The notes under the pieces were generated by a model. The model saw only the letters and a list, made by a program, of their open reading frames with translations. It made no database searches and had not been told where the DNA came from. A stretch of 64,000 nucleotides of DNA from Oikopleura dioica. Lineage: Eukaryota > Animalia > Chordata. Position numbers and translations under genes: made by a program. The stretch spans positions 1,054,001-1,118,000 of the forward strand of contig OU015570.1 in NCBI GenBank assembly GCA_907165135.1, read 5' to 3'. Of this stretch, positions 13,506-41,342 are shown one piece after another. The stretch's first letter is position 1. Each line of letters begins with the position of its first letter.

Positions 13506-13533
13506 CCCCCACATTTTATCGAAGTGTATACCT

Positions 13534-17882: not shown

Positions 17883-18164
17883 TCTAAATGGGGGGAGGAT
17901 GATCTTGTGGCCAAGTTTACGCGGTTAAATTGGTTGGAAATAGTTAGTTTTCAACTAGGCCTTCTTCGTTTACTCTATTTCTCTTCAAATAAACTTTCCC
18001 GTGACCGACCGTTCTGCGTGCTCATTTTCCGCGAATCACAGCCAATTTCTGTTTTTTATATTTGTTTTAGCTGCTCTCCTGCCTTCCAATTGGACTCGAC
18101 AACTCACCGCTCTTTTCGAGCGGATCTAAACCGACTGAGAGACGCGATTAACAATCCCGCGATT

Positions 18165-21528: not shown

Positions 21529-22494
21529 CTAGTTCTCGCCGTGGGTGATTTTTGCGTGAGCTCTCTCGTTTGTAGAGATGACTTTGAAGGCAGAGCCGTG
21601 TATCGTGTGTTCGAGCTGGTTATTCTTGTACTGGTTGAGCATGAACTCGTTCTTCCAGCGACACAGATTTATGATGTGCTGGTCGGGTACCCCATTCTTG
21701 AGACTCTCTACCACAAAGGAGACCCTCATAGAGTGCCCTGTTGGGCAAACTGCCCAACCCAGGCACTCCGAGACTGTGTGGTAGAAATAATTCATTTTTG
21801 TCGTATTCATTGTTGTCTTCCGCTTGCCGTGAGAGTAGGAGAATAGCTTGCCCTTGGTCCTGGAGGCGATCGCCTCGAGGATCCAGCTTTTAATGTCGAT
21901 CTCAGAATTATCTGTTATCGGGAGCGTAATTACCTCTCGTCTCTCCTTTGTGGAATTGCTTTTCGAAGATCTGAGAGGCATTTGTAAGAAAACTGTGCCG
22001 CTATCTTCTTTCCAGCGGATGTCTTCGATAAACAGGTTTACTATTTCCCCAGTTCTCGCGCCAGTGCAGAAACAAATATAAGAAACTGCGGCCCCGACTT
22101 TCTTATTTATCTGACCTGAGTTATACGCCGTTTCCCAGAATGGAACCATTTCTGAGCGTGCAAAAGCCGGGGCCTGTGTTGGTTCGTAGAGATCTTCGTT
22201 CGATTGAGCCCTCGACCGACTTGATCCCCACTTCGCGATTATCTGTTTCTCGTCTTGAAGCAGGGCCCGGCCCTCGATCTTTTCCCAGAATCGCTCCATC
22301 GACGCGGCCATTGTCTTCCATAGCACTGGGCGAGACGGGTTGTATAGCGTGAAGGTATCCAGGAAGCCGGAGATCGATCGATCTTCGGCCCCTTTTCCTC
22401 TCCACGAGTCCCACGCGTGTTTTAGCCAATCTTCTCTGCTTTCCGACTTGTTCCAGTTTAGCGGATTATCCCTTGAGTTAATTTTCTTAACCAT
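21529..22494 (-). CDS. Tyrosine recombinase (321 aa)
   Basis: Catalytic set R (GARTGE), K (SSKS), HxxR (GHSMR), W and Y (CRWKNEFMLNQY). Confidence 0.92.
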   Translation of the reverse strand: MVKKINSRDNPLNWNKSESREDWLKHAWDSWRGKGAEDRSISGFLDTFTLYNPSRPVLWKTMAASMERFWEKIEGRALLQDEKQIIAKWGSSRSRAQSNEDLYEPTQAPAFARSEMVPFWETAYNSGQINKKVGAAVSYICFCTGARTGEIVNLFIEDIRWKEDSGTVFLQMPLRSSKSNSTKERREVITLPITDNSEIDIKSWILEAIASRTKGKLFSYSHGKRKTTMNTTKMNYFYHTVSECLGWAVCPTGHSMRVSFVVESLKNGVPDQHIINLCRWKNEFMLNQYKNNQLEHTIHGSAFKVISTNERAHAKITHGEN

Positions 22495-22528
22495 TCTAAA
22501 GGGAAAGGTGAAGTCATCGTATCAAAGA

Positions 22529-23153
22529 TTATTGTTCGCAGAGCGAATTTGAATTATTGGCAGGTAAATGGAATGTATAAGTGTTCAATATTACTGGGTC
22601 TTGCCCATAGTTCAGTTGAGAGTTTTCCCGAAGATGTCTTCGAAGCTCAATCGCTTCTTTCCCCAATTTCCTAGATCTTGGAGGCCACGAGCCCATGCGA
22701 GCGTGATCTGTTCGATGTGGTCCAAGGAAACGGTCGAGGGACAATTCGATCGAAATGTCCCTCTGATAATCCTTGCCCAGTGTTGGATATCTTCTTCGTT
22801 TTCGAAGTTGTAGGGTGTGATGGAAGCGAGGAAGGTCTTGAGCGTAGCGGCGTCGATTTGCTTCCCTTGCGATTTCCAGACTATTTTTAGGTCGCTTATC
22901 GCTTATCGCCCCTTTGAGGCGGCGCGCTTGATTTTCCCTTCTCATGAGTAGCGCTGTCCCGCTCGCGGTATAAAAGCGCCCGCTCCCTCGAAATTTTTAC
23001 CAGAAAGAGATCTGGGAGAAATTGATCAATTTCTTCCGATTTTGCTAGAATGTCCCTTGCCGAGCGGCAGAAGAAACTCAAGCCTGAGCTCAAGGAGCTC
23101 AAAAAAGCGATCGGGGTCTTCAAGGACTTCAAGAGAGACCACCCTTCCGACAA
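22529..23153 (-). CDS. Two overlapping unknown ORFs (22896-23153, 22529-22945) upstream of YR
   Basis: ORF track only; the first is partly antisense to the 23050 gene. Confidence 0.3.
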
Positions 23154-23536
23154 CTACACAGCCGAGGAGCCGTGCTTCGAAGCCTTCGGTATCAACAAGG
23201 CCCGCGAGTTACAGTCGGTGCTCGATAATCGAGTCATTCCCATGGTCCGCCGGGTTCACGCGATCTTGCGCAAGCAATCTTGGGTAAGTAACCCCTTACT
23301 TTTGTCCCTTTTTTTATCTAGCACAATTTAAACTAAATTAATTTTAGCAGTGGGAAATGAAGCCTCTCATTCACCCCGAGAACGATCTCCGAAGCACTGC
23401 CTTCCAAGCCAAGCGGCTCCGCGGGGACGTCGTGAAGACCCTCAACCTCATCAAACGACAACGGTTTGCGCATCGATCGATGCCCAACCGGATCACGATG
23501 AAGCCCTTTGAACCACGCCCCAACGAGACACACTAA
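23050..23536 (+). CDS. Antisense accessory gene in YR element, 2 exons (23050-23283, 23348-23536), ~140 aa, basic
   Basis: TGG|GTAAGT donor, 64-bp intron, ATTTTAG acceptor, 62 further open codons; ATG preceded by TGCTAG|A. Confidence 0.6.
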
Positions 23537-23883
23537 GCCGAGTGCAAGATACTCTGTACTTTCTGTTTCCTAATTAAAGCTTATTTCCGGTTCGTTCGAG
23601 CCTGAAAAATCAAGTGCGTTCCTCCAATAAAGGATGAAAATTTTACTTGCGACCCTTTCCTTCTAAAAAACCTTCCCAGCAGGCTTTCATCATTCGCAAC
23701 GCAGCCGCTTTGAACTCATTGTTCCAAATGTTCATTCTAAATGAAGTTGATTAGCAAGATGAAAGTTTTAACTGGAAGTAATTTCAATTAGTCGCAGAAA
23801 GGAAGTTGAGGGGGAGGCTCGACCCGATCGGGCTGAGCCTCCCTTAATCGAAGCAATAATACAAAGTTATTTGTTCTGGTCAG

Positions 23884-24563
23884 CTACCGGGCGAAAGCCT
23901 TCTCTTCCCTTCTTGTTGCTTTTCCATGGCCGTTTCTGGTTCCCTTTGTTCTGATCAGAACGCTGGGAACTCTCTCCTTCCTTCTTGTGTTTCTTTCCGC
24001 CCCTTTTGAAGCTGCCAGACTTGCGTTTTTGCCCGCTGTTTCCGGAGAAGTTGTTCGCGTCCTTTCCAGCGCCAGAGCCTTGAGCAAGGATACTGTAGCG
24101 CTCTCTCTCCTAAAGGAATTGAAACTCGGCGATAGCCTGTATTCTACCTCATCATTTTTGAAGAATTTCTTCATCTTGTGGTATTTTGCAGCATTCTGCA
24201 TTTCTCGCTGAGGTCGACTTCTGTCCTGGTTGACCTCCTGTTGCACGCATTCCTCTGGATCCAGAGAATTGCGCATGTCCTGGCTACCCTCATCTGATCC
24301 CTGCGTAATTCCGTCGATCGTTTTGACGAAATCATCGAGGAGTCGTTCGTCGCACAAGTCTTTGACGAGAGTGCACCATTCGAATCTGCTCATGAGCGGA
24401 TTCTCTCGCATCTGACGGAGTATTCGCTGCATGGTGGGGAAGTCTTCATGATCTTGACCGGCCGCCTTGTCGTATCTGAAAGTCCACTCATTACAGAAAT
24501 TTATCCCAGCTGGGCTTACCGGTGAACGATCTCATACGCTTCGGCGTACTGGAGAGTCCTCAT
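23884..24563 (-). CDS. YR-element accessory gene, 2 exons (24563-24520, 24475-23884), ~211 aa
   Basis: 44-bp GTAAGC...TTTCAG intron in frame; ATG overlaps upstream stop (ATGA). Confidence 0.6.
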
Positions 24564-25197
24564 CTTTTTGCGTCGGTGATCAGTCTGCGAAAGCAGATCC
24601 CGATCTCCCTGAGAGACTCTCCCTGTTCTTGTTCTAGTTTCCGGGAGCCTCGTCCGATTTGGTAGAAACGGCCGGCTTTTGCGTAACTGAAATTGAGCTT
24701 CAGTTCTTCCAGCGCGTACCTCTTCAACTCGGCCTCATTGTGGTCGATCATGCGGGCGACCTCGATCTTTTCTTGTCGGAGTTTTTGTCCTCCTGCTTCG
24801 TCGCTTCGTATTCTGCCAAAATGTTGGCTTCGCCCTCGTCCCAGATCAGCTGGTCGTCGTGATGGAGGTTTTCTCCTCGGCGAAGAGCGCCCTTGATGTC
24901 GTCCAGGCTTTTCCTCTTCGCGTGGAGCACCGCTAGCTTCTTCAGGTTTGCCTTCATCTCTTCGATGATTGTTTCCTGAAATATGTAGATTTCGGATTCG
25001 GGAATCATTACCTTTCTCTCGCGGTCGTCCTCGATTTCGCTGAGTAAGAAACAGTAGCGGTCATCCTTCTGCAGGTCCGCTTGGATTTTCTGATGGTCGC
25101 TTTCCGAGATTGGGGACTCCGTCAACTCTGCTTTAAGCGAGAGTCTGTTCGAGTCCTTCTTGTTTTCCCCTCTCAAGGGAGCGAAGCCGGTACTCAT
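24560..25197 (-). CDS. Two coupled ORFs in YR element: 149 aa (25197-24748) and 63 aa (24751-24560)
   Basis: ATGA stop-start overlaps at 24748-24751 and 24560-24563; charged, helical composition. Confidence 0.55.
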
Positions 25198-25380
25198 CCT
25201 AAAATAGATCTATCTTAGGATGCGATAACAAAATTGTGTATATTGAGAAGGGAAAAAGAGGAAAACGATTGACTACAGGTTCAGGAAATGTAACACTTCA
25301 GAGTCTTGTGTATCTGTTGAGGCCTTCATTGAAGTGTGCTGCTACGGTGCGGGAATCTTATTTAGGTAAAGAGGGTTGGT

Positions 25381-25824
25381 TTAATCGACTAGCGTGCCTA
25401 CTCTACCCATCCCTTCCAGAAACAACTCAGGCCGGAATAAGCAAAGAAAGTTGGTGCCTCTGACATTGTAGACAATTTGGTCCACCAGCTTCCCTACATT
25501 GATCAAGACCTCGAAGGTGTTTTTCCCTGTTGTTTGCCAATCGTTCAGTCTTGCCAAAAGGTCGTGGAACCCAGCGCCGAACGACGCTGAGATCTCGATG
25601 GATTTTGAGAAGATTTTGGACAGAAGTTTCAGGCACACTTTCCAGTCGTCGGATCCGACGACCGATTGTGTGTCCTTCACCTTCATATTTGCCCAAATTC
25701 TTTCTTTTTCCTCGAAGAGATTGTTAGCTGCTGCTACTATCGCATTCTTTTTGTTCTCGAGGTTTGTGTTGGAGCGCCAGCGGCACGCTTCGATGAAGTT
25801 TTGTTTCCTGTCCATTCTGAACAT
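25381..25824 (-). CDS. Unknown 147-aa ORF overlapping the end of the RNase H-MT ORF (possible further small exon)
   Basis: ORF track; TTTTATAG acceptor-like site just upstream. Confidence 0.5.
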   Translation of the reverse strand: MFRMDRKQNFIEACRWRSNTNLENKKNAIVAAANNLFEEKERIWANMKVKDTQSVVGSDDWKVCLKLLSKIFSKSIEISASFGAGFHDLLARLNDWQTTGKNTFEVLINVGKLVDQIVYNVRGTNFLCLFRPELFLEGMGRVGTLVD

Positions 25825-26852
25825 AGATCTATGTTCTCAGGATGATGACCTATAAAAGAAAAGGAAACGTGAGACGGTTCTCTCCAAAATCCAAACTCTT
25901 CCGAGCGGACTTTCGCAGGAAACAGCACCGGATTATTCGTTTCTGGGTCCAGGATCCTGAAATAAGCATTATTTAAGACCTCGGGCCAGATTGGGGACGC
26001 TGTCTCGTGTTCTTCTAGACAGAAAATCCAAAAATTATTCTTCCCCCTCTCCTGGAGAAGCTGAAACGCGAAATCCTCCATAGGTTTTGGTGGGAAAACC
26101 CAGAGGACTTCGGATCCGAAATCCTCTTGGGTGAAGAAATCGACTCCCGCAGCTCCGGCTGTGTCCCTTAATGACCAGAACTTTTCGCACTTCGCATTCG
26201 CTGGGTTAGCAAAAGCGTCTAAAGTGCACTCTTTTCCCAGGGCCTTGTTTAGGTTGAGGAAAGCTTGATTTTTTATCACAGCTTCCTTCGTGTCAATCTT
26301 TCTCGAGGCTTCATCTGCCTCCTGTTCCGTTGTGGAGACCCACTCCATATCCATGGCAATATTATATTTATTTGCCTCCTCATGGATCATCCTGATCCAT
26401 TTTGTTAATTCTGGGCTTTTCCTGCTCCCATGTAAGAAGCAGGTTTCGACTGCCTTGTTATCCTGTTTAAACAGGACTCTGGAGTTTTTGAGAAGATGGC
26501 CGTAATTTTTAACCACGTAGTGGACAGCGTAGGCTTCTTTAATCATGATAGGTTGTTGGGACAGAGGATCCTCTGGATCCCAATAAACCGTTTCCGTAAT
26601 TCCTTTCCCCTTAAACTCGACCCCGGCCGCCCCACTGCTGGCGTCCGTGAAGATTTTGAATTCGACAGGCTTTAAGCCCTTCTTCAGCCATGATCTTTTT
26701 GTTGTGATGTATTTAGCCTGGACCCAGGTTAAAAGTTCATCTTTTAGATCATCTGAGACTGGAAGGGTGTGATTTTGGTCTTGGTTAGTGACTTTCAGCG
26801 CTTCTGTCACTCTGCGGATATAAAGTCGCATATTGTGCACCACCAAAGAGAC
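25737..26852 (-). pseudogene. pol: RNase H + N6-adenine methyltransferase-like domains of DIRS pol, N-terminally truncated
   Basis: IFTDASS, KEAYAV, QDNKAV, ADEASR (RNase H); LDAFANPANAKCEKF, GVDFF, VLWVFPP (DIRS MT); the first ~15 aa of the track ORF come from non-element sequence. Confidence 0.88.
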
Positions 26853-27356
26853 AGCATTATTAAGGTAAAACGGCTCAATCAGGGGTTCGCTGATCAAAAT
26901 GTAACTTTGAAAAAGTGTCCATTTTAAGTTCGGTTTTAATTTTATTTATTTTTCGGGCATTCGTACAATACCGTTGCGCTCTCACTTTTGCGGCGGTGAA
27001 AAATCTCGATCTGAAGCCCCATCAGATCGAGATTTAGCGCGAGGCGTGTATTTTCTGAGACGTACAACACCTACCACACTCCCCGCAGATCAGAGCTTTG
27101 CCGAGCGCGCACCAATCAGAGCGCGGCGTGAAATAAGCGCCCTCACTCGGAAATAAAATGAAGAATAAGGTTAATTAAAATAAACGGGTTTTTTGACGGG
27201 ATTAATGAATTGAAAACTTATTTTTTCTTAATAAGGCGCTTATTTTATAATAATCTTTCAATTATATAATATCATCATAATAATATAGTTACATATAATA
27301 TAGTTTAAATAAATTGATCGATTATTAAACTAAATTTTATTGGCTTTTCCACACTC

Positions 27357-27524
27357 AATCCCGGCTTCAACCACTTCAATATTTGCTTCAACAACTTCGA
27401 TCCTAGCTTTACAGAAGTCAATCCTGGTCGTTCCAGCGTCAATCCCGGCTTCTTAAGATCCGATCCGGGCGTCACTTTCTTCAATTCTAGCTTCTCAGAT
27501 GCCAGTCCCGGCTTTTCAGTTTTC
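27357..27524 (+). repeat. Degenerate 21-bp minisatellite (aatcccggcttc...), 8 units; inverted relatives near 41355-41540 and 42400-42540; copy near 12922-13089
   Basis: Strict 21-nt spacing of aatcc/gatcc/aattc starts. Confidence 0.75.
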
Positions 27525-27546
27525 TATTATTGCTTCTTGAATAATA

Positions 27547-27940
27547 ACGTAATTTACCCCTGCGAAACCTGCTATATCAACACACTCGTGACCAAAACTG
27601 GCGTTACGAAACTGGTTTATTCTGTACAGCAGTTAACCAACTTCTCAGATAAAACGCGTGCGACCACAGTGACGACTCAGGCAATCACAGCGGCGGCTTG
27701 GACGACGTTGGAGAAGCTGGAGGAAGCTGCGGTCCCAAAACAGGATAAACCTAAAGACCTGTTAGCCTGAGCAATCTCTTACTTGCCCTTAACAGGACTT
27801 CCGTTTCTCTACCTCGAGTTTGGTACGCTCAGCGCGAATAACGCGAAAGCACTGAGTCGTACTCAACACGAGGTCCGCGTAGGTGTACTCTTCCTCGGGG
27901 CGAACCTTTTGGTAGCTCCGATATACACCAACCATTACGT
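27547..27940 (-). repeat. 3' LTR (394 bp)
   Basis: Identical to 40949-41342 as read; minus-strand AATAAA at 27616-27621; preceded on minus strand by purine-rich GATAAAATGTGGGGG. Confidence 0.92.
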
Positions 27941-27968
27941 CCCCCACATTTTATCGAAGTGTATACCT

Positions 27969-29287
27969 TTAGCGGCGCGGTCCTCCTCGGCCGCGTTTTC
28001 CGTATCCAGGTCGCGATGGGGCCGGTCGTTTGTACGCGTTCGGCGGGCGGAATCCTCCGCTTGTTTCGCCAAGGTCTCGGCCCTCCGTGATTACTCGCCA
28101 ATTGTAGCACCAATTCGGTCTGCGAACGCGTTCCACCAGGTAGTTGTTTGTTTCCTGGTTCCATCTAACTCCCAACGCCCTCAGTTCGCCGTTATTTTGC
28201 ACCGTTATTATCGGTGCCTCGCCTTGGTGGTCCAGCGCGAACACGTTGGTCAGTTTGGCCTTGTCCGACCAATTCTTCAGGTACGTAATGGTCTCTTCGA
28301 CAGACCAGGATTTCATCCCTTCAATTTGACCCAGAAAGTTCAGAGCCCCTTCGCGCATTTTCACCGCTTCATGGTTGACTCGGGTCACCCATTCCGCGAT
28401 TTCATCCTCATCCGTCGTTCCAGTTGGCGGGGGTTCGATCTTAAAATCCTGTCACGCGTGAATTACTGTTTCGGGGAGCCGGTCGATTGATTTTTATCAT
28501 CTGACGCGGCCGGCTGATAGTGGCAACTGTTCACTTACCCATGACGGCGCGATGGCTCCCAAGAGCTGTCTTCCGCAGTATAAAGCTTGGTCCACAATGT
28601 CATCAGGACTAACTTCAGCCATTGTTTGAGAGATCAGCTTTTTTAAACCAGCCGTCCCTCCTTCAACGCGAGCTAGACGCATCTTGAAGCCACTGTTTCG
28701 GGGGCTGAACGGATCAGTTTCCACATAGAGGTGAGAGCAATACATGTTTACGCGGTTCGGCGCTTCTAGCCACGCGGTCAGGATGTCTCTTAATTTTGGT
28801 TTATTATTTTTCTAAATTATTTTTAGTTTTACCTAGACGCGCGCAATGTCAGCAGTCGAAATCCAACGGAGGACTGCTTATTCCATCTCTGAAATCCTCA
28901 AGTAAGTTATTTTTCTTCCTTGATTTTTACCTCTTCCTCGAGGAATAACGCGCTTTCTTCCGCGGATGCCACGTTTTTTACGGTCGCTTCCAAACTTGAC
29001 AAGAACGCGGCAACTTCTCTATCAGTTTCGTTGATTTTAAATTCCTTGACGTTTTTTAACGCGTCAATGAATTTATTTAGCCGGACACCGATTCGCAGCG
29101 TTATTACCGCTTCACGGCTTGCATCTTCTATGTCAGCTTGAATGGCGGCCCGCGATTGGCTGGCTGACATCAACCGCGTTTCGTTCCCGAACATGTTTCG
29201 CGGCTGATTTTGATTTTTGTGCGCGTTAATGTCGAGAAAGCTCCCCGGCCTGTCCATATCCATGCGGGGTGAATCGCCCCCTGCCAT
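27969..29287 (-). CDS. Accessory gene g1: exons 29287-28931, 28888-28833, 28788-28539, 28448-27969; ~380 aa; RG/P-rich basic C-terminus
   Basis: Three GT-AG introns (42, 44, 90 bp) join three separate ORFs in frame without stops. Confidence 0.7.
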
Positions 29288-31145
29288 TCTAGAGAAAAAA
29301 ATTTTTTTTTTTTTGACAATTTCGTTTAAGTTCTATTCCAAATTTTCCAGATTTTTTAAAGTGACCAGTTCTTCTATTCGCGGTTCATTGTTCTGTTCCT
29401 TCTTCAGCTTCTAAAATTATGTTTTTAGAAATTTCGACACGTACGCCGATGCTACTATTGGCCGGAATGACGCGGTCCGCCAGTTGATTGCTCAGTCGAA
29501 AGCTACTCGAAATGGGCAACCGCGGGCTTATTCTAGTGCTCTTTCCAAGTTCGAATTTGACCATGGAGGGCGAGGCGCCAGAATTGTTTTCCGACGTGCC
29601 GGCATTCATGACCAAATTGTCGGCCGAAAAGCCCTCGATGAGATTTTGCTTGCCCGCGTTTCAGACGAACAAATTCAGCGCGGGAGCCTTCGGCTCCGTC
29701 TTCGATTCCGCGTCGGGGCCAACGATGTCATTGTCCCCGTTGATTTCCGATTGCCCAACAAAGGATCAAACAAACAAGATGTTCACGGCCTTGTTTTTGC
29801 CATGGACTCCGCGATGTATCAAGTTCGCGATCCTAAAGTCACCAACGACGCGAAAGTCAAATTTCGCCGCGCCTTCTTGGAGAGGGTTGCTCGCTGGGCG
29901 ACCTTGACCGTGGTGGCTCTCACCAAATATTGGGTTCACGCTGGTCCCTGCTCTTTCGAATTAGCCGGAGTGCCCCGAGAGACCGCCGAGGCTCACCCAG
30001 ATGAATCTACCGCCTATTCCTTTCGCGGGCGAAATCCCTGGCTTGTTTTCCTGATCTGGTGCCAGTACATGCATGGGGTGAGTTTCGAATTTATGGATTA
30101 AATAAGCATCCTTTTATAACTTAAAGCATCATTTTAATATTTGCTTTTTAGCGCGTCGTTTCTTGCAATCGAAATCCTGACTGGCCTATGAACCGCGTCC
30201 CCATTCAACTACTTTTCGACCGAGATCAACTGAATATCCCTGGGTCGCCCCAGGCGATAATTCTTACCGCGATTAAAGCCGTTCTTGGTGACCAAATCTT
30301 TGCCGGTGATGGGCTCCAGCGACGCGACCACGGGGAGTTTACGCGATTCCATCATGACAACTCTTATAGTGAGTTCCATTTTACAACCTGAATTATTATT
30401 TTAACTTATTATTTCAGAGCTCCTCTCACTTAATCTACGTAATCGCGCTCAACTCTTTCCTATCCCCTCCATCTTGTTTCTCAAGATGCTGGCTTGCTAC
30501 TTCTACAACAACAACGTATCCCATTCATTTATTGGCGAGATAACTTACTTTTTCACCCGCGAGGCCGATTTCTTGCGCGTCTTTCGGCGTTGATTTCGAC
30601 TTCTTGTCCACTTTTCGCGGCTCAACTTCTGTTTTTAGGACGAGCAGTATACTTACTACGTCGCCGGGGCCTTTTACCTTATTGGCGTTTACGGTAGCCC
30701 TGAATTCGCGCTCTACCATGGCATTTGGAGGCTCCTGCTCCAGTTCATCCATGACGCAGGCATCTACAAGCCGCTTGTCACTCGCGTTCGTCGCGGAAAC
30801 GAGGAAGTGAAGTACTTTCCCCGCGATACTTTTTCAAAAGCCGGTATGAACTTTGAGTTTGTAACCATTTTCTAAATTACACCTCTAGGCCCGGCTCGTC
30901 TCTTCCCTCTTGGCACGATCGAGCCTTTCTTGGGCACGCGTCATCTCTCCTCCCTGTTAGCCCCTGGGGCCTCCATGGATCGATGTCCCTTTTACTCGCT
31001 CGATCAGGATGTACCGCCACTGGAGCGTCGAGCGCAACACGGTCTACGATGGCCTGGCAACCGCGATATTGAGCGACAACAGCAACGCTACCGCGCTATC
31101 CCAAGCTTGCTTGGTGGTTTTGGCCGATACCGTGCTATTGCTTAA
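28846..31145 (+). CDS. Accessory gene g2 (antisense to pol): exons 28846-28901, 29429-30077, 30152-30368, 30418-30515, 30639-30843, 30889-31145; ~493 aa; exon 1 uncertain
   Basis: Five GT-AG introns, all frame-consistent, total 1482 nt. Confidence 0.62.
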
Positions 31146-31660
31146 GTCCGCAGCTCGTCCTTTCCTGTCTTAGCGCCGAAGTGTTTCTTTGCCCATTCCG
31201 CTGCTCTTAACTGTCCCCACGGTATTCGCGATCGTTTCGTTGGACGCGCGAAAGTGTACTCGCCGTCTTCATCTTTTAAAACGATATTATTTACTGTTCA
31301 CTGTCGACAGTATCTTATAAATTTGCTATTTTCCTTGTAATCAAGAAATAAAAGTGAGGGACTATTACCGTTTCGGCTTCTCTTGCGAACGCGTTCCTTT
31401 TCATTTCCGCGGTTCTTCGGGCTTGGTTCTTCCTTTTTTCGCGTATTGCGGCGGTCAGTGTTCATTAGACAGCGGAAACGAGTCTGAATAGCGATAATTT
31501 TAATAAATTTTTGGTAATTCGCCGCTTTTGGCGGGGCTTAAAATAAATCTTGAACTCGGCAGACTGTAACGATCGCGGAGGCTCAACTTTAGGTGACTCG
31601 CCGCATTTCTGGCGCTGATTACTTTTCGTAGATGTTCATTTTTCCTAAATTGTTGTTTCT

Positions 31661-32316
31661 TTAGACGTCTGGCTGCCGTTTCATACCTTCAATCGCGTCA
31701 GTTCCCCGATTCTGGTTTCCCGCGTTACCTTCCTCGTTTTCGCGTCCGGTCAAATCCTGGTAAGAAATTTTTCTGGCCGGTTCAGTCAGTCCTCGCGTCC
31801 TGTAGATCATATGGCCATACTGAGAATGGCCAATCGCGAAAGTTGGCATCAGCGATCGCTGCAAGTAAAAGTTGTAGCCGCAGATTCCAACTCCCGATTG
31901 ACGAGTGATCTCCAACAGGCGATTGTTCGTGACCGCGACCAGATCATGGTACGCGGCTCTGCTTTTTTCCTGGATCGCCAGAACTTTGAAACTCATTACT
32001 ATCATTCTTACCGCGTCCACTTACCTTGGGTTAGATCGTCTACCCCTTTTCTGATTCTGGCGATGATGACCTCAGACGCTGAGGCGTGTCCCGCGTTCAC
32101 GATCTTCGTATTCGTACTGTTGAAGGTCGCGTTACAGCCCGGACACGGTTCCCTTTCGGGACAGCATCCTCGACAAAAGAAGCTACCACACTCGTGGATT
32201 CGTGGCTTTCCCGCGAAATCGAGCTCGTGAGTGCACTTGAAGCATTTGCCCAAGACCGACGGCGGGAGGTTTTCCCAGATTTTAAGTTCGTTCAACGCGG
32301 TTAAACCGTTTTGCAT
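31661..32316 (-). CDS. Accessory gene g3: RING-like zinc finger protein, exons 32316-32025 and 31983-31661, at least ~204 aa
   Basis: CxxC-x14-CGS-xx-CxxC-x6-CxxC; 41-bp GTAAGT...CAAAG intron in frame. Confidence 0.7.
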
Positions 32317-32598
32317 TCTAAATGGGGGGAGGATGATCTTGTGGCCAAGTTTACGCGGTTAAATTGGTTGGAAATAGTTAGTTTTCAACTAGGCCTTCTT
32401 CGTTTACTCTATTTCTCTTCAAATAAACTTTCCCGTGACCGACCGTTCTGCGTGCTCATTTTCCGCGAATCACAGCCAATTTCTGTTTTTTATATTTGTT
32501 TTAGCTGCTCTCCTGCCTTCCAATTGGACTCGACAACTCACCGCTCTTTTCGAGCGGATCTAAACCGACTGAGAGACGCGATTAACAATCCCGCGATT

Positions 32599-33741
32599 AT
32601 GCCAACTAACAAACGGACGGTGTCTGAGGCTGGACTTGATGCTACCACTTGTACTGTCGCCCAGTCTCCGACTCGAAAACATCCAGCAATTTCTCGCGTC
32701 GAATATGTGGATCTGTTGACCCAAGGTGAGCCTTGTGGTGCGCTTTTCATACTATTAAATTCATTTAAAGGGCCGAGAGTTAAAATTGAACCTCTCGACT
32801 ACGAGGACTCTCTCGCGATGGAGTTCGATGTGCCCCGCAAGCTTCCGCGTCCGAAAATTGGGTCAGGCTCTTTGTATGATGCATCGCCTCATACATCTAC
32901 TCCTGTCGAAACTGGGGCACCATACATTTCACGCTCAACCACCGGGAACGCTTCTGAGGAGATCGAATTCAAAACTCCTGACGCGACCGCTTTTGACGAA
33001 GCACCGAACCGTGTGTCCAAACGTACACGACGCGAAATCACCACCATAGTCGAGAACATGGAAAAGATTTTCCACCAGAGCCGCGAGTCTCGCGCCTCTG
33101 CTCAGGGCTTGTCTCGTCGCGTCTTGTATCGAAGTCCATCCCGGCCTTCAGAGTATGTGGAGTCCATTTGGCTGAAATGACCCTTCTTTAGGTATATTTA
33201 CGCGACCATCCCTTCGGAGCTATTTCCTGAGTTTGAGGTAGATCTCCTTGAGCGATTTTCATCCAAGGAGTTGCACATTTCGCGCGAGTTGGTCCGGATC
33301 AGGGCCGATCTTTATTATTCGTCTGATCCGCTCAAACATCCTTTCCCGCACATTCGAAACTTACTCGTCCACATCGGTGATTTTTCAGTACCTTATTTTA
33401 TAAACCGCCCCATTTTAGGCTACGCGCTTGATGTTTCAAAGACGCCGGTGAAAATGCATATCAATCTTACATTCCCGCCTTCTGTCGGACCTACTTCTGG
33501 CAGCCCATCTTTCAACTTTCGTAATAGTATTCGCGAGCTGCTTTCCGCGTACTTGGTGCAGCTGTCTGAATATTACCGCGGCGCCGCCTGTTTGCCAGCT
33601 CGCGTTGATGCGCATCGGCATCAGCTGGACTCTCTGGCGCAAAACGTTCTCGACTATTTATTCGCCGAGGACGTTGGGAAATCATTCAGAATCCCAGTTT
33701 CAATTCGAACTGATCTACTCACCACTTCCCATGATGAATAA
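32599..33741 (+). CDS. Accessory gene g4 (antisense): exons 32599-32725, 32771-33152, 33192-33741; ~352 aa; S/T/P-rich N-half with a VKIE SUMO-consensus-like motif
   Basis: 45-bp and 39-bp GT-AG introns; the second fuses ORFs 32311..33180 and 33271..33741 in frame. Confidence 0.7.
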
Positions 33742-34796
33742 CTTTCTCCGCGAGAACTGCTCCCGAATACTACTTCTACTCCTATTCACCGTTTTCAACC
33801 TCACCTGCACTGCTATTTTCATCCAGTACGCGATCCACCAGTATGCTACCGAGCTCGACGCCATGCAGTTTGATATTTCGTCTTTCCGCCGCGTCCTCGG
33901 GCTCGATAGCTACGTTCCCCAGATTATTTCTGGTGTTGATCCTGTAAGTTTTCCAATTTAACTCTCATTTTAGTCATCTTTATAATTATTTCTTTGGCTT
34001 AACTAACGCGAATTTCAGGTTCCCCGACGCGTCTTCCAACGGAACTACCACCACTCTGGAACTGCCCGATCGCGACACGGTCGATCCGCGTATTCGCCGA
34101 ACTACTACGTGCCCATGCCCGCCTATGGAGCTCCCGAGGCTCCCCTTACTCTTGGCGGTGCTTCACCTTACAGATGGTACATTTATATTTTCTCCGATCA
34201 TTTTCTTATTTTACGCATTTAGGGCACTCTTCGCGCTTTTCCTCATCATTCTCGTCCCTACTCTCATCTGCTGCTGCGGCCGCCCTGTAATCAGCGTCCT
34301 CAAGCACGTCAACCGTACTTTCGCCAACCTTGACTTCAACTTCGGCGAGTCTGCCGACTCCTACGAAGATGGGCCCGAGTACGAGCAGGTCAGAGCGCTT
34401 CAGCGACAAAACGATGCCAATCGAAAGATGATTCGTGCTCGAAAACAACAGGATCAGCTCAACCGCGAACTCTCTCGACTGCCTCCTACCGCGGTTGTAC
34501 CTTCTACCGTCGCTACTCCTCCACCGCGCTATTCCCGTGTTGACGAAGCCGTCCGAGGCGTTGACGCCGCCGCTGCCACGTCCAGATCTGCGTCTCCAGT
34601 ACACGTGGCACCTCTGAGCCGCAGCTCAGCTCGATCCTCGCGCACTACTTCTAGAGCCGCGTCCTTCCGCCCCGCGACTCGGACTTCGTCCATTGTTTCC
34701 ATCGTCGAGCTTCCTGATGACTACGTCGAGCCTATCGCCGATGACAATTCTGTTTATGTTCCCCCTGCTGGTAGCTCCTCCGACGCTTGGGTTTAA
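33731..34796 (+). CDS. Accessory gene g5 (antisense): exons 33731-33943, 34019-34176, 34223-34796; ~314-aa membrane protein with two hydrophobic segments and CCC
   Basis: 75-bp and 46-bp introns in frame; ILLLLLFTVFNLTCTAIFIQYAI and WALFALFLIILVPTLICCCG. Confidence 0.7.
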
Positions 34797-34873
34797 ATTC
34801 CTTTTAAAATCACTGTCTTCACTACCTTTCCTTTCTTTTCCTTTTATTCGGTAAATTCTCGCCTTATTGATAG

Positions 34874-34920
34874 AATAAAAATTATCAAAAAAACAAACTT
34901 ATAAACGCGTTTATTTTATT
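34874..34920. terminator. Convergent polyadenylation signals between g5 (+) and integrase (-)
   Basis: AATAAA near 34874 on +; TTTATTTTATT at 34910-34920 gives AATAAA on -. Confidence 0.5.
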
Positions 34921-34931
34921 GCCCTGCGCTT

Positions 34932-37900
34932 CTACATCAGCAGGAGTTTTTTAAGTTCTTCAGGCTCTTTTCTCCAGGCGACTCTTTCACTTACCAGAGA
35001 TCGCGACTGCATGAATTCTGGCATCGCCAGCTCTGCGTTTTGTGCTAACATCATTATCCCGGCGTTTTCCTCGTCCGTCACGCAGTTACCGTCGACAATA
35101 GCTCTAATCGCGTTCAAAGACCATGTGTAAACTGCCTGCCGTTTCAGCCCGACTTTGACCGCGAAGCGAACTCCCTCAAACCAATCTATTCCTTCTGGGT
35201 TTTCCTCTGTCGCTACAATTTTGAAATAGGGGTTAAGGTCGTTTTTCTTCCATTCTCCCTCGATTAAAATGTAATCCCCCACTTTGATTGGTTTTTCGAG
35301 CTCAGATTCATACGTATCGCCTTCCTCATAAGGTCTGAAAATAATCGGTTTGCGCGTTCTACCTTTTGCCTGATTACGCATCGCCGCCTTTCTCCCTTGT
35401 TCGCGGCATTTTTTAATGTAATTCAAAAGTTTTTTCAGATCAACTTTAACAGGCTGGTCGGTTTTATCCCTGCCGTAATAGATTTCGGTCGGAGTGTATC
35501 CGTGCCGGCTTGGCGTGTTATTAATTCTCATCGCGGTATCTAGAGCGATTCTTTCGGCAGGACCGCGCTTGCTTATTTCCGCGACAAGTATCTTATCAGC
35601 TTCTGAATTCTTGAGTCTCCTGGGGAGAGGTAATTCTTGCTCGCGCTTCTTTTGATAAGTAACACAATTTCTACATTCCATCGTTGCCAACATTCATCAG
35701 CAGCGATTTTCTTGTTCACGCTGCATCCATCTACGAAGATTTTTACCTTCTTTTCCTTCAATGGTCCCCGAACAAAATCAGCAAGGGCTTTCATGAAGAC
35801 CTCAGTCTCATGATCCGCGTCGTTGTTGGCCTTCTTGATCGGGTAAAGCCGCGTGAATCCTGAGATTGCCTCCGCGAAAACATAAAATTTGATTGTGGTC
35901 TCATCTGCGCCTGGGTAAGAGTTTCTAGTGATTAGATCCGCGAACAAAACCTGTCCTAATTCCTTAGGCTCGTAATCATCAAACTCCTTCGGGATAACCT
36001 CAATCTTCGTTTGTTTGCGAAAGTAAGTGCACCCAGTGCATGATCTGTGCACTTTTTCCACCACTTTATTCATCCCAGATGCCCACCAATCAAATCTCAC
36101 GTGTTTCTTTAGCGCTGTTAACGATGTGCATCCGATGGCGCTTTTCAGCTTTCGGACAATCACCTCCAGGAACGCGACCGGAACAACGATTGGTCTGACC
36201 ATTTTTTCCTCGACAAAAAGCGCGTTCTTCCGCAACACCGCGATCCCGTCTACTACCTCGGACTCTGTCGACTTCCGCAAGCTCTCAGCGACCCTGTCGC
36301 TGTAAGGTAACTTGCCATTCTTCCGTTTTGATTCTACTGCTTTCTGTATCGACTTATCCGTGAGTTGGATATCCCTAATAAGATCCCGGTTTCTTAGAAG
36401 GTCACTGTATGTTCCTTTCGCGACACAAGCTTTTAGTCTCTCCATCACCGGTCTCGCGTCTCTTATCCATTTGCTTTCAGCTCCTGTATCCGACGCGCTA
36501 GTCTCCCGGTTTAGGCCCTTCGCACGGGCTCGCGTACACATCTGATGAACTTCATGGTCGATCTCGTCGCCGCGCAACTCCGTCATCCTCTTCGACTCCT
36601 GAAGCTCGCAAAGGATCGCGTCCCTTTGTGTAGAAGGTAAGCCGAAGATTCTCTCAAACCTCGCGAGAGTCACTGTAGGCTCATAGCTCTTTTCCTTTAT
36701 CGCCGTAACCTTATCACCCGCTCCTTTGCTCAGCTTACCTTCTCTCTCGATGCTCATGCAAACGCGGCAATTCTCATCACAGGGTTTTAGCCAATTGTCC
36801 GATCGGCTAATCATGTCTACTAGATCGACCTCGATTGATCTGCAGCTTCTATAAATTATTTTGATATCATAAGACATCAGTTTCATAAGTCTTTCGTTAA
36901 TTTTATTATCCGCGGCTAGCTCTTGACCATTCAAACACCTCTTGTATAGTTTTTCTACACTCAACGAGTCCGTTATGATTGTGACAGGATCTCTCACCAA
37001 GTCAATCTCCCAGCTAAAATGTATAACCGCGCTTAAAATTCCGTGCAGTTCAATCATACACGAGCTCCATTGCGTGACATTTCCTGTATCTGGTCTTTTT
37101 CGCGAGAACAATTTATTTATCCTAACTTTCCGTTTACCTTCTATCGTTTCAACCTGGTACAAAAAGGCTCCAGTTCCCTTGTTGCTGCTGTCACAACAAA
37201 TAAATGTTTCTAGCTCCGGAATTATCGGGTATAAATTTACCAAACAGCCCGCGACCTCCTTCTGGACTTCTTTGTACGTGCTTATCAGTTTTTCAGTCCA
37301 TTCTATTCGCGTACTTAGGCTTTTCCCTCCCCCACTTGCTTCATACAGGTCTGATAAAAGCTCAGTCCTAAACGGGAGAGAGTCCCCAATATAAGTTATC
37401 CATCCCAGAACTCGCTTCAAACACTTTACTGTCTTTACCTCCTCGTGATTTTGCAACGCTATTTTATCCAAGATGTGATTGCTCGCCATTATCACTCCGT
37501 TCTTCACGCGTCTTCCGAGGATTGACAAATCCTTGCTGAGGAATTCACACTTCTTTCCCTTCAATCGCAAGTTAAAAGTAGATAGCGTGTTCAGTACTGC
37601 CGCGACGTTTTCTAGAAAACTTTCAGGGGACGACCCTGTTATGCAGATGTCATCAACGTAAATGAAGCAGTACTCGCGGTGACTGTATAAAATCCTTTTT
37701 AGCTTCTCTCTCGCGATCAAAGGGCTCAAAATCCATCCCATTGGCAATCTTTTGTAGCACATCGGACCCTGGTCTGGGTGGTCAATACAGAAGTATTTCC
37801 ACATTGACGGATGAAGGGGGAAGCAGAAAAACATGCTACTGATGTCGATTGTCGCTATTAATCCAGTTTCTGTGAACCGCGCGACATTCTGCAGGACCTG

Positions 37901-38065
37901 TCTTATCGAGTCTGTTGGCCGCGCCGAGTGTGACGTGTCATCGTTTATCATGGCTCTTTTACAGTCCGCCACTATTCTGATTGAGCCTGCGCTTAGCTCA
38001 ACTTTCGCGGTGTCTGTATTTTTCTTCCCCACAGGAAAGAATGTTAGAAAATGTGAGGGCGTCAT
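34932..38065 (-). pseudogene. pol: RT-RNase H-integrase of the LTR element, frameshifted in integrase (~35580-35690)
   Basis: IDISSMFF, RLPMGWILSP, YVDD, CCDSSNKGTG, WWASG...CTGC, FADL, FVDG, GYTPTEIYYGR. Confidence 0.92.
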
Positions 38066-39252
38066 GCACTTCCGATTATTCCCTCACTAGCTTCCGCGTC
38101 CAACTTCTCTCGCAAGGCCTTAACCACCGATTCCGACATCGATTTTCCGTATGATTGTTTAACCACCTTTCCTGAAGTATTTCCTGTAATTTCCGCGTAA
38201 ACCTCAAACTCTTCTCCTGGAACTAAACCTTGTGTTCCCTCGAACAGAATTTTATTATTTTCTATTATCTTCCATAAACGCGCTGAAAAGTCCACCCCAT
38301 TTTCGATTCCTGGAAGCACATCCTACATCCTATCTACCGTGCATTCTTTCCACGTGTTAATTTCGCGAGCTTTCTGGTGAAGCCTTTCCAAATGACGCGC
38401 GTATTCTACTCGTGAATCAGGGTTGAATCTGGAAGTGGCTCGCATATCGACTACTTCGCTGTTGATCCTCGGGACAATCGTGTCGACCCGCGGTGCTGGA
38501 GTTAACCTGTCATTCTTTACCTCTTCATACATATTGAAACTGTGGATTACATTATTGAACGACTGAATTTCCGCGTGACTCTCCGCGTCGCGGTTGGCTA
38601 TCTCGAATCCTCTTATAGATACTCTCACGCGAAAACCTTTTCCTCGTGACTCGCACCAAATTTTTGCCGAGTAACGCGCTAAATCCGACAGCGAGAGCAG
38701 CACCGTGTTGTCGCTGCTCCTGCTGACTCTTGCTTCCGAAAACTCAATTTTTACGTTCTTATTCAGGCGCAACGCGAACGAAACTGTCAGTGGGAGGAAT
38801 TCCAGCTTACCTCCGCCTGCTGTCCTGCCGATTCCGCTTTTTGCTGGTTTAACGCGCACTATTGGTAAGTTCTTTATCAACGAATAGAGAGGAAAAGGTA
38901 ACAAACTTACTGAACATCCTGTGTCCAGTAGAAGCTTAAAATAAGTATAGTTCTTTTTATTTCTTTCGCGTTCTAAATCAGGTAGGCAGAACCAAATATC
39001 TTACAATTTGTTTTCACATTCTTCTACTGTCTTCGTTCCTTCTTCTATTGACGCTCTTAACCATGGGTTATTTCTTCCTGTCCAAAGCTTCGCAAATATC
39101 TCACCTCCCATGTCGAACGCCGCGTATCCATCAGTCTCTTCTTTGTTCAAATCCATCGCGAAATTATTGAAGTTGTCTGTGTCGCTGTCAGAGCTCCACT
39201 CGCACTCCTCGCAGAGTGCTTGAAGCTCCTCCAGGTCGACCTCTCCGTCCAA
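38062..39252 (-). pseudogene. pol: Protease region of pol with in-frame stops at 39001-39003 and 38323-38325
   Basis: FKLLLDTGCSVSLLP read at ~38895-38940, upstream of and in frame with ORF 38323..38904. Confidence 0.85.
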
Positions 39253-39357
39253 CGCGTAAAATTTTCGCCGCTCACCCTGAGGTTTAACACCTTTTTTCTT
39301 TATGAAACGGCTAAATTTCCTGGGAATATCTACTCGTTTTACCTGACCATTTTTGCT

Positions 39358-40848
39358 TTATAAAATCTTGTCCGGGTCCTCTTTCTTTAAGGACTCTATT
39401 TCGCGTCTGGACAGGTATTGACCGGTGTACTGGAACACTCTGCCGGTAGATATTTCCACCTTGAGATCGCGGCTATTAGTTACCTGTGCAAGTGAAATGT
39501 TTCGCGAATTTGAACGTGGAAATTGCCCGCGATTATCGCTTTGCCATTTCCGTACATTATCCCGCGAATTTGGTGGCTTGTTCCCCTTGAAAAACGCGTT
39601 GAGGTCGTCCTCATAATCATCAACCGCTGGTGTACCAACGTCCTTGCCTTCTTCGGGGTCGAAAACGTTGAAAGAGTTTTTCTTGTCCTTGCTGGCGTAT
39701 TTCTGATCATTTACAATCTTCACCAGCGAGGACCGGAAATCTCCTCCATCATCAATTTCTAACGCGACTTCTATCTGACTCAGTTCAACATGAGATGTCG
39801 ATTGTGTCGCTTTTTCGAGTTCATCTAGGAAAAGCTTTTTCTCGCAAATGATATCGCGACCATCCATTTCACGAAATTCAATATTTCTTTTAACACAAAT
39901 CTTTTCCAGGATTTCCTTCCATTTAGACTCTTGCACTCCCAGTGTACAAAGCCCCAGCAAAAAATACTCTGCCAAAGGGCCGAACCTATCAGGAGTAGTA
40001 CAGTACTGTTCGCGGAAGATAGATACAGACATAGGGGTTCCTTTTGGAAATCGCCCAGCTACAATCGCGTTATCTGTCATGACCTTTTTTAATATTTTCT
40101 TGGAGACTTCGTACAAAGTTCCGGTCTTCACGTGGCTCAGTTCCCCTCTTCCTAAGATTCGTAGGAACTTAACAAAGCTTAGGAAGTCATTTTTTCCCGC
40201 GTTTCCGCAGAAATTTTTAATCATCATCCGAACATATTGGTTTAAATTTGTACAATAACCATTTTTTAGGTCCTCCTTGGAACTATCCTCGACGTTGTTG
40301 CAGATCGTCGCGCAAACCAGGCGAAGAACGTCCAATGCCTCCTGGCACGCAGATTTCGTGAATCCTGCCTGAACGTGGAAATAATTCCGCAGCGCCAAGT
40401 TCACTCCAGGAAAATGGTGCTCCTTGAACGCGGCTTCACTCTCTTCCGCCGTTTGGCCGTTGAAATCAACGAACCTGTCCTCATTATCGGACACCTTCGC
40501 GTTCTCCAACTTTGGATGCCCCGCGTATCGACCTGCTACTCTCCATTGTTCGAACTCTTGGAGGGTAGATGGGATCGATAACCGTCCGACCGTGGACGGC
40601 AGCTCACCATTATTCTCGCCCCATGTAAGGGGAAGATTAGCGATTTGATCCACAAACCGATTGTCCTTCAAAGACTTCCGTACGTCGTAAGTAGCGACAG
40701 TTACCAGGTGATCTTTCCACGCTATAATCTTCCGATCACGTACTGCTGCATCACTATTCGTGAATGCCAAAGGGATTACTGCCTTCCCTGTATAAAACTC
40801 GTGCCCTTTGGGCGCGAGGAACATGTTATTCATGATAGCTTCTTGCAA
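39358..40848 (-). CDS. gag: gag-position ORF (496 aa; likely ATG near 40833), no CCHC knuckle seen
   Basis: Long ORF between PBS and protease; assigned by position only. Confidence 0.7.
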   Translation of the reverse strand: MQEAIMNNMFLAPKGHEFYTGKAVIPLAFTNSDAAVRDRKIIAWKDHLVTVATYDVRKSLKDNRFVDQIANLPLTWGENNGELPSTVGRLSIPSTLQEFEQWRVAGRYAGHPKLENAKVSDNEDRFVDFNGQTAEESEAAFKEHHFPGVNLALRNYFHVQAGFTKSACQEALDVLRLVCATICNNVEDSSKEDLKNGYCTNLNQYVRMMIKNFCGNAGKNDFLSFVKFLRILGRGELSHVKTGTLYEVSKKILKKVMTDNAIVAGRFPKGTPMSVSIFREQYCTTPDRFGPLAEYFLLGLCTLGVQESKWKEILEKICVKRNIEFREMDGRDIICEKKLFLDELEKATQSTSHVELSQIEVALEIDDGGDFRSSLVKIVNDQKYASKDKKNSFNVFDPEEGKDVGTPAVDDYEDDLNAFFKGNKPPNSRDNVRKWQSDNRGQFPRSNSRNISLAQVTNSRDLKVEISTGRVFQYTGQYLSRREIESLKKEDPDKIL

Positions 40849-40930
40849 ATAAATGGCAAGGCTCGAGGTTTGATAAAGTGGCCGCGCGGGGTTCGTTCCC
40901 GAAGTCCCAACACAGAGTCAGGTAACTCTT

Positions 40931-40949
40931 GCTGTGACTTCAGTCACCA
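40931..40949 (-). promoter_or_regulatory. Primer-binding-site-like sequence TGGTGACTGAAGTCACAGC
   Basis: Starts with TGG at the 5' LTR edge; first 7 nt resemble tRNA-Trp-type PBS. Confidence 0.55.
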
Positions 40950-41342
40950 CGTAATTTACCCCTGCGAAACCTGCTATATCAACACACTCGTGACCAAAAC
41001 TGGCGTTACGAAACTGGTTTATTCTGTACAGCAGTTAACCAACTTCTCAGATAAAACGCGTGCGACCACAGTGACGACTCAGGCAATCACAGCGGCGGCT
41101 TGGACGACGTTGGAGAAGCTGGAGGAAGCTGCGGTCCCAAAACAGGATAAACCTAAAGACCTGTTAGCCTGAGCAATCTCTTACTTGCCCTTAACAGGAC
41201 TTCCGTTTCTCTACCTCGAGTTTGGTACGCTCAGCGCGAATAACGCGAAAGCACTGAGTCGTACTCAACACGAGGTCCGCGTAGGTGTACTCTTCCTCGG
41301 GGCGAACCTTTTGGTAGCTCCGATATACACCAACCATTACGT
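40949..41342 (-). repeat. 5' LTR (394 bp)
   Basis: Identical to 27547-27940; 7-bp terminal inverted repeat ACGTAAT/ATTACGT. Confidence 0.92.

Follow-up and report, generated by a model that had tools for sequence, protein, structure and literature searches.

Can a long terminal repeat (LTR) retrotransposon pass on a set of intron-containing genes that are placed on both of its strands? LTR retrotransposons are usually taken to carry gag, pol and at most env or one extra open reading frame (ORF), and to shed introns on their passage through RNA. The question is raised by a locus on the Y-specific contig OU015570.1 of Oikopleura dioica OKI2018_I69 (assembly GCA_907165135.1), of which a stretch of 64,000 nt (positions 1,054,001 to 1,118,000), called the window below, was analysed. 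On the minus strand of the window lies a Ty3/gypsy element in which 7 kb of DNA (27941-34930; all positions are those of the window) separate the stop codon of pol (about 34932) from the 3' LTR (27547-27940). For this stretch between integrase and LTR, an original prediction made from the nucleotide sequence had proposed a cassette of five spliced genes in both orientations. The interval is indeed delimited by the pol stop and the 3' LTR, and we found that it holds about five genes, designated g1 to g5, two of which are shared with a second, deeply diverged copy. We consider it probable that the 3' half of this element, which is approximately 13.8 kb long and Tor-like by host and class, is a heritable multigene module without an env gene.

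About five spliced genes between pol and the 3' LTR

In the cassette, six stretches of 180 or more codons are free of stops, compared to 0.53 expected and a maximum of four in 300 first-order Markov simulations. Along the plus strand the genes are arranged as g1(-), g2(+), g3(-), g4(+) and g5(+), which corresponds to the two divergent pairs g1/g2 and g3/g4; the predicted orientations and pairing were thus borne out. Genes g1 and g3 have the orientation of pol (sense), and g2, g4 and g5 are antisense to it. The stop codons of g5 and pol are 140 nt apart, and AATAAA motifs are present on both strands between them, in agreement with the convergent poly(A) zone facing pol that had been proposed. 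The public annotation holds g1 to g4 (annotated proteins are named Oidioi.mRNA.OKI2018_I69.YSR.g17070, g17080 and g17110), and in one annotated copy g4 and g5 are fused into a single model.

A locus of OU015570.1 retrieved through a cassette protein (L010, positions 1,062,165 to 1,083,307 of the contig) is 100% identical to 8165-29307 of the window. The source assembly is based on Nanopore reads, and its genes were predicted by AUGUSTUS with RNA-seq hints; their median intron length is 49 nt (PMC8008620). In the cassette there are about 14 introns, counting those taken from the public annotation or from models common to the second copy. They are 39-99 nt long, AT-rich and almost all of the type GTRAGT-like...YAG. 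The original prediction had counted 13, most of them of 39-90 bp.

Frame-consistent joining of exons, which had been put forward for all models, is a weak argument when taken alone. Free GT-AG exon chaining yielded 1167 models for one gene and eight poor introns in one region and was dropped as evidence; exons were joined only along introns which are annotated or common to the second copy, and it is the second copy that supports the models. A codon-usage score trained on the pol of the element was also dropped, as it favoured the A-rich strand everywhere, and was replaced by codon-position composition and by the substitution patterns between the two copies. In the antisense genes, first codon positions are G-rich and third positions T/C-rich, and the third positions match the strand skew of the whole element block. 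Thus, the silent sites of the antisense genes follow the skew of the element, which fits a long residence in the present orientation. The cassette genes are genuinely protein-coding, and their short introns are of the host type.

Gene g1 (27972-29287, minus strand, sense) has introns of 42, 44 and 99 nt. Spliced along the introns common to both copies, it gives an open frame of 377 aa which is 82% identical to a 369-aa annotated gene in the second copy; the public annotation of the window covers only the last 204 aa. The stop codon of g1 is located 31 nt from the LTR. The N-terminal part of the protein is helical, the C-terminal tail is RG-rich, and it has no transmembrane (TM) segment. From this tail, together with a gag that lacks a zinc knuckle (see below), we guess that g1 may bind nucleic acid. 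Gene g2 (28846-31145, plus strand, antisense to pol) is annotated with 493 aa and has introns of 39, 74, 49 and 99 nt; according to the model of the second copy it starts at about 29360. It is followed by an extra conserved coding exon of 89 codons at 30876-31142.

Gene g3 (31619-32316, minus strand, sense) is an annotated gene for a protein of 204 aa with introns of 41 and 42 nt, and one unique intron model reproduces the annotated length. The protein has a RING-like motif, CxxC...C-G-S-F-F-C-xx-C...C-P-x-C, and weak sequence matches to BRE1 RING structures in the PDB (E 0.004); its composition suggests that it may be a RING-type ligase-like factor. Gene g4 (32599-33741, plus strand, antisense to pol) encodes 338 aa, has introns of 45, 39 and 42 nt and is annotated as P0018, which is Oidioi.mRNA.OKI2018_I69.YSR.g17070. 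The start of g5 (about 33600-34796, plus strand, antisense to pol; introns of 75 and 46 nt; within the annotated model P0019) overlaps the 3' end of g4 in a different frame. The codon-position composition of g5 is sense-like. Its product is a predicted single-pass membrane protein with a hydrophobic N-terminus, a short ectodomain and a TM helix followed by CCC; the tail is long, rich in S/T/P/A and contains a charged, coiled-coil-like stretch.

Pfam and NCBIfam contain no family for any cassette protein. AlphaFold2, run without alignment depth, gave predicted local distance difference test (pLDDT) values of 38 for the second copy's g2 protein (P0016) and 45 for the C-terminal exon of g1. Apart from the weak RING similarity of g3, no family was recognised for any product of g1 to g5. 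Scans of IMG/VR with pol and with g2 gave no matches.

A second copy indicates purifying selection and retention of introns

In an exhaustive HMMER search of 1.84 billion representatives, the large exon of g2 had a single relative, the above-mentioned P0016 (76% identity, E 8.5e-107). The second match of this search, P0017, is a bacterial FMN-binding protein and was rejected as a chance match. P0016 is encoded by a second copy of the element (L008), located about 360 kb away on the same contig. The 392-bp LTRs of this copy are 99.7% identical to each other and 94% identical to the LTR of the window, and they are flanked by an own 3-bp duplication, CTG. In plus-strand orientation of the window, the order in L008 is LTR, g1, g2, extra exon, 428 bp of unrelated sequence, the 5' 1.2 kb of gag, and LTR. 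The cassette is thus found in another copy in part: g1, g2 and one further exon are there, and g3 to g5 are missing together with pol. The g2 model of L008 (406 aa, four introns) maps to about 29360-30836 in the window.

The exons of the window and L008 have approximately 75% nucleotide identity and 76-90% amino-acid identity, and their alignment contains no gaps or stops; gaps pile up in the introns and in the intergenic interval. By codon position the differences amount to, for example, 35/30/118 and 6/2/30, and to 15/16/42 in the extra exon downstream of g2. The ratio of non-synonymous to synonymous substitution rates (dN/dS), by which the prediction was to be judged, was 0.05-0.15 in g1 and 0.05-0.12 in g2, so that the exons of both genes lie within 0.05-0.15; dS is near or past saturation. 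This pattern shows that purifying selection has maintained g1 and g2 in both of the deeply diverged copies.

The introns were kept as well. All three intron positions of g1 are common to both copies, with GT-AG borders in each (lengths in the window and in L008 42/46, 44/73 and 99/97 nt), and so are all four positions of g2 (39/52, 74/43, 49/48 and 99/100 nt). The lengths differ by non-multiples of three, and the downstream exons are therefore in frame only if the introns are removed. The original prediction had noted that introns on the strand of the genomic RNA should be lost in reverse transcription unless splicing is regulated. This concern is answered by g1: its sense-strand introns were kept in copies with separate target duplications, which implies that the RNA copied into DNA was unspliced for them.

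When L008 (8180-13944) is compared to the window (27547-31280 and 39736-41342), the LTR (94%) and the 5' part of gag (about 85%) are more alike than the cassette (75%, dS saturated). This unequal divergence points to different histories and suggests recombination between element lineages.

The cassette lies inside a Ty3/gypsy element

According to its domain content and to the order protease (PR)-reverse transcriptase (RT)-RNase H-integrase (IN), the element is a Ty3/gypsy LTR retrotransposon. Self-comparison of the window revealed a 394-bp repeat in three copies (13112-13505, 27547-27940 and 40949-41342), which are 100% identical. Based on the LTR pair of L008, the true LTR has a length of 392 bp, corresponding to 40950-41341 for the 5' LTR (copy L3, minus strand) and to 27548-27939 for the 3' LTR (copy L2, minus strand). 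The LTR ends, CG...CG, lie inside a 7-bp terminal inverted repeat, and AATAAA is found at LTR position 320. By sequence inspection, a primer binding site (PBS)-like site starting with TGG was detected directly 3' of the 5' LTR (40934-40949, minus strand), where it is also present in L008, and a polypurine tract (PPT)-like run ending with GGGGGA abuts the 3' LTR upstream (27940-27952, minus strand). The PPT-adjacent interval 27941-27974 shows no difference between the window and L008 at its 34 positions. Comparison of the flanks revealed a 3-bp target-site duplication, TAA on the plus strand, at 27545-27547 with its partner at 41342-41344.

The gag-PR-RT-RNase H-IN region (34932-40917, minus strand), which we count as one broken gene, was assigned with the help of Pfam, the PDB, hhalign and motifs. 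A DTG motif upstream of RT marks PR (within 38326-39000), and it is followed by RT (about 37514-37948; Pfam RVT_1, 2.1e-16), RNase H (about 36932-37300; Pfam RT_RNaseH) and the zinc and core parts of IN (about 35666-36382), with the C-terminal part of IN extending to 34935. The best matches of RT and RNase H among solved structures were Ty3 RT (4ol8, 4.8e-16) and Ty3 Gag-Pol (7q5b). The Pfam model rve did not match the pol of the element; IN was detected instead by profile-profile alignment of the C-terminus of pol with the zinc finger and DDE core of 11 gypsy polyproteins (hhalign, probability 96%, E 3e-9). Together with the LTR, PBS, PPT and target duplication, these domains uphold the gypsy identity that had been predicted. 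In a motif scan, neither the gag of this element nor that of its metagenome relative L001 had a CCHC zinc knuckle, a motif common but not universal in Ty3/gypsy elements (Metaviridae); the two gag regions are homologous. An exact look-up of the pol ORF gave no match, as did Rfam and tRNA scans of the window. A DIRS-like or Crypton identity was considered and rejected in view of the DDE integrase, the plain LTRs and the target duplication; the tyrosine recombinase of this locus is part of a neighbouring fragment (see below).

Relatives with an antisense gene downstream of pol

When long polyproteins were excluded from the search, pol had one close database relative, P0001, with 38% identity, and no named Tor protein was among the matches. 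A metagenome scan with pol recovered seven marine contigs with 30-63% identity. In the longest of them (L001; Ga0115008_10011369), the gene next to gag-pol is convergent with it and contains two short introns. The 243-aa N-terminal part of its product contains four N-glycosylation sequons; a TM helix, a cluster of cysteines and a charged tail come after it. In the contig encoding P0001, convergent, spliced genes are also present on the minus strand downstream of pol.

The convergent gene of L001 and g5 have in common the motif GGA-x-P-x-x-W, an intron which splits the W codon in the same phase, and the succession of TM helix and Cys cluster. Their Smith-Waterman score is 84 compared to 35 +/- 5 for shuffled sequences, and none of 1000 shuffles reached 84. 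The relatives that carry an antisense spliced gene at this place have a pol only about 40% identical to that of the window. Based on these similarities, an antisense spliced gene for a membrane protein downstream of pol looks ancestral to the clade. Within the 1.5 kb of sequence downstream in L001, none of the remaining cassette genes was detected.

A discontinuity of the reading frame exists in a similar general region of integrase in L001 (about 5000-5100), in the P0001 contig and in the pol of the window; it is an in-frame stop in both metagenome contigs and a frame change in the window. This may reflect a common feature, for instance recoding or a short intron, and not decay. A 300-bp repeat (97%) of the window, at 3713-4019 and 49423-49728, has weak translated similarity to positions of about 470-700 in two further metagenome contigs (L002 and L003), upstream of an RT fragment. 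These contigs have 63% identity in RT, and the similarity of the repeat hints at their origin from a related appendicularian genome.

Proposed expression of the cassette

Both sense genes are preceded by acceptor-like sequences: a (Y)nAG is located one base 5' of the ATG of g1 in both copies, and a TTTAG one base 5' of the ATG of g3. Such a pyrimidine-rich AG would fit either cis-splicing from an upstream donor, by which the env mRNA of Tor3a is made (PMC4402516), or spliced-leader trans-splicing. No acceptor of this kind is present 5' of the ATG of the antisense genes, which presumably use promoters in the divergent intervals. We propose that the full-length sense RNA which is copied into DNA is unspliced, as in retroviruses, and that g3 and g1 are read from processed derivatives of this transcript. 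Internal promoters of antisense orientation, located in the short intervals within the two divergent pairs, would drive g2 and g4/g5. The introns of these antisense genes cannot be removed from sense RNA and are hence inherited.

Comparison with known elements

Ty3/gypsy elements named Tor are the most abundant interspersed repeats of the O. dioica assembly (PMC8008620). The sole extra gene that Tor1 to Tor4 of this species may carry downstream of pol is a sense-strand env (Henriet et al. 2015, PMC4402516). In Tor3a it is expressed by splicing of the LTR transcript and in Tor3b/4b from a promoter inside the element, and Tor target duplications are 4-5 bp long (PMC4402516). The element described here resembles Tor in its host species, its Ty3/gypsy class and the presence of additional coding sequence between pol and the 3' LTR; moreover, the Env protein of Tor has a C-terminal TM domain, and g5 has a TM helix. 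However, Tor has one sense env, for which no internal introns are reported, whereas the present element has about five extra genes, all with introns and three in antisense orientation. No Env-like conserved motifs were found, and the sole membrane protein, g5, is antisense, which sets the element apart from the published Tor descriptions. A cassette of this kind is not described in the Tor literature that we could read, and we found no other paper on it, in line with the original suggestion that it is possibly undescribed.

Plant elements of the Retand, Grande and RIRE2 types have long regions between pol and the 3' LTR with antisense ORFs, which mostly encode the TRP28 domain (PF04195; PMC11963269). 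The interval of 2.9-6.6 kb in Retand is comparable to the 7 kb found here, and the antisense coding regions are constant in those elements and, in analogy to antisense genes of retroviruses, are suspected to have a regulatory function (PMC11963269). In contrast, no cassette protein has a TRP28 domain according to Pfam, the plant elements do not have divergent pairs of mixed sense and antisense genes, and introns are not mentioned in PMC11963269.

Spliced accessory genes are also known from complex retroviruses, and some are antisense, such as HBZ of HTLV-1 (as cited in PMC11963269). The proposed likeness consists in an unspliced RNA which serves as genome, in processed RNAs for the downstream genes and in a spliced antisense gene driven from the 3' part. 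Unlike in these viruses, there is no recognisable sense env here, pol is of the Ty3/gypsy type, the accessory proteins are unrelated, and each accessory gene contains introns of host size (39-99 nt). The element also differs from DIRS/Ngaro elements, as it has a DDE-type IN and plain LTRs, and the tyrosine recombinase lies outside the LTR-bounded unit. New with respect to the systems compared are about five genes in two divergent pairs, introns on both strands and an antisense-only membrane protein, with none of the signature domains of the compared families.

It is tempting to speculate, and at present no more than a tentative view, that appendicularians host a clade of 'complex' Ty3/gypsy elements, the ancestral hallmark of which would be the antisense spliced gene for a membrane protein directly downstream of pol. 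In the O. dioica lineage a bidirectional accessory programme would have been built from it, with the sense genes expressed by (trans-)splicing and the antisense genes from internal promoters, as an independent counterpart of complex retroviruses. Such a programme would comprise one RNA-binding-like, one RING-like and one membrane protein as well as two orphans, with introns of the host type inside the genes of the element.

Local rearrangement and neighbouring repeats

The 3' part of the element is duplicated. A block of 7,021 bp, made up of 694 bp of outside flank, the LTR and the cassette as far as an exon of g5, in which it breaks off, is present at 12418-19438 (minus strand) and 26853-33872 with 99.97% identity in the self-comparison and a period of 14,435 bp, and the annotated gene models are repeated likewise. 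Since the block contains outside flank, it represents a secondary local duplication and not an independent insertion. As a consequence, either LTR copy is a possible 3' partner of the 5' LTR. The block may have originated by a real segmental duplication, by recombination with a circular form or through a problem in the assembly of repeats.

Between the two blocks there are 7.4 kb (19439-26852) with minus-strand coding, which include an annotated gene for a 321-aa tyrosine recombinase (21529-22494; PF00589, 2.8e-12); an ORF for an RNase H-like protein is located at 25740-26945. No RT and no terminal repeats were found in or around this fragment, which resembles a DIRS/Ngaro-like retroelement truncated at its 5' end and is not related to the gypsy pol. 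The whole complex is bracketed by an AT-rich, non-coding direct repeat of 2,688 bp (9769-12456 and 43343-46021, 99.5%). The 694-bp flank begins with the same 39 bp with which this repeat ends, and the 39-mer occurs in three copies. The possibility that the 2.7-kb repeats are the LTRs of a giant outer element was rejected, as they have no target duplication and no TG/CA-type ends. An inverted repeat of a short repeating motif (83%) is located at 27324-27427, within the 694-bp flank, and at 42455-42557, within the 2 kb beyond the 5' LTR. Its presence on both sides of the insertion places the insertion site inside some other repeat.

A second, unrelated Ty3/gypsy element with matches to RVP, RVT_1, RT_RNaseH and rve was found at 57002-62301 (plus strand). 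ORFs continue downstream of it to about 63.5 kb, and tandem repeats of 89-93 bp are present at 62878-63253. A relative of this element adjoins the deleted copy in L008.

Weighing the evidence

Several observations weigh against a heritable module of the element. Compared to the single gag-pol ORF of 1434 aa in L001, the gag-pol of the window has five interruptions, namely three in-frame stops and two frame changes; the element is thus not as complete as it had first looked, although part of the frame changes may be errors of the Nanopore assembly. L008, the sole other copy, is internally deleted and has lost pol and g3 to g5, and g3, g4 and most of g5 are seen solely in the two local copies with 99.97% identity. 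Both known loci are within the non-recombining Y-specific region. The gene models of the cassette are AUGUSTUS predictions made with RNA-seq hints, and neither Pfam and NCBIfam nor AlphaFold2 gave a function for any of the proteins. In the window, g2 does not have two signals of the second-copy model, one start and one canonical splice signal, and for this reason the annotators' model of the window takes a different 5' end. Further, the genomic RNA would need read-through of the internal AATAAA motifs. Finally, the 3-bp duplication of both copies and the CG...CG termini differ from what is described for Tor, with its 4-5 bp.

Alternatively, the cassette could consist of host genes, possibly Y-linked and testis-expressed, which were captured by transduction or read-through, or enclosed by LTR-LTR recombination, and which are passengers serving the host. 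Ampliconic host gene families are common in Y-specific regions, and the location of both loci, the host-type introns, the annotation of the cassette as ordinary genes, the similarity of g3 to a cellular RING protein and the fact that no intact autonomous copy with the cassette was seen are all compatible with such an origin. However, 31 nt separate the end of g1 from the LTR, the two copies do not differ in the stretch next to the PPT, and in both of them, which have different target duplications, g1 and g2 stand between LTRs. Moreover, no LTR-free paralogue of g2 (exhaustive search) or g4 (word-indexed search) was found in annotated O. dioica proteins or elsewhere, which speaks against the ordinary host genes named as a possible refutation by the original prediction. 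Passengers should drift, yet dN/dS is 0.05-0.15 at saturated dS; the third codon positions match the strand skew of the element, and relatives with 40% pol identity have an antisense membrane-protein gene at the same place. We regard a host origin as unlikely. A foreign origin would also be given if the cassette came from, or was exchanged with, another mobile element, namely the tyrosine-recombinase element of which 19439-26852 is a fragment, or a nested insertion, so that its containment in a gypsy element is only apparent. Indeed, the first copy of the cassette directly joins the 7.4-kb stretch for the tyrosine recombinase and the RNase H-like domain, the two block copies lie 14,435 bp apart, and the divergence of the cassette (75%) far exceeds that of the LTR (94%) and gag (about 85%), which indicates different histories. 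But the latter is explained equally well by recombination between element lineages, and the junction inside an exon of g5, together with the outside flank in the duplicated block, marks a secondary rearrangement and not a native boundary. The recombinase fragment has neither RT nor terminal repeats, the cassette genes of L008 stand between LTRs with no recombinase nearby, and relatives whose pol has a DDE integrase also have a convergent gene downstream of it. Altogether, such an exchange appears highly improbable.

An artefact, composed of a mis-assembled, repeat-rich Nanopore contig and of over-fitted gene prediction, can hardly account for the data. It is true that an error rate of 1.3% was estimated from the alignment of Illumina reads and that a warning concerning tandem repeats was given (PMC8008620), that a 7-kb block is duplicated at 99.97%, and that GT-AG chaining is very permissive. 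Nevertheless, a diverged second locus shows the same order of LTR, g1 and g2, with codon-position-specific substitutions and conserved intron positions that neither mis-assembly nor faulty prediction can produce, independent metagenome contigs have the same architecture downstream of pol, and the Y-specific region is hemizygous, which makes collapse or duplication of haplotypes unlikely.

Significance

A heritable multigene module of a Tor-like element, as we propose it, means that about five extra genes with about fourteen introns of host size are carried on both strands, which is unusual for an animal retrotransposon. For two of these genes, g1 and g2, comparison of the copies gives evidence that they have long been under purifying selection and that their introns outlasted the insertion of a copy. 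At the level of annotation, several 'hypothetical protein' models of the public O. dioica Y region are now flagged as element-borne. If the cassette is expressed, it would be a compact natural case for studying the balance between splicing and packaging of unspliced RNA, and the upkeep of antisense genes inside a retroelement. It would also be a case for the accessory functions, such as those of a RING-like factor and a membrane protein, that a retrotransposon may need in a very small, fast-evolving chordate genome.

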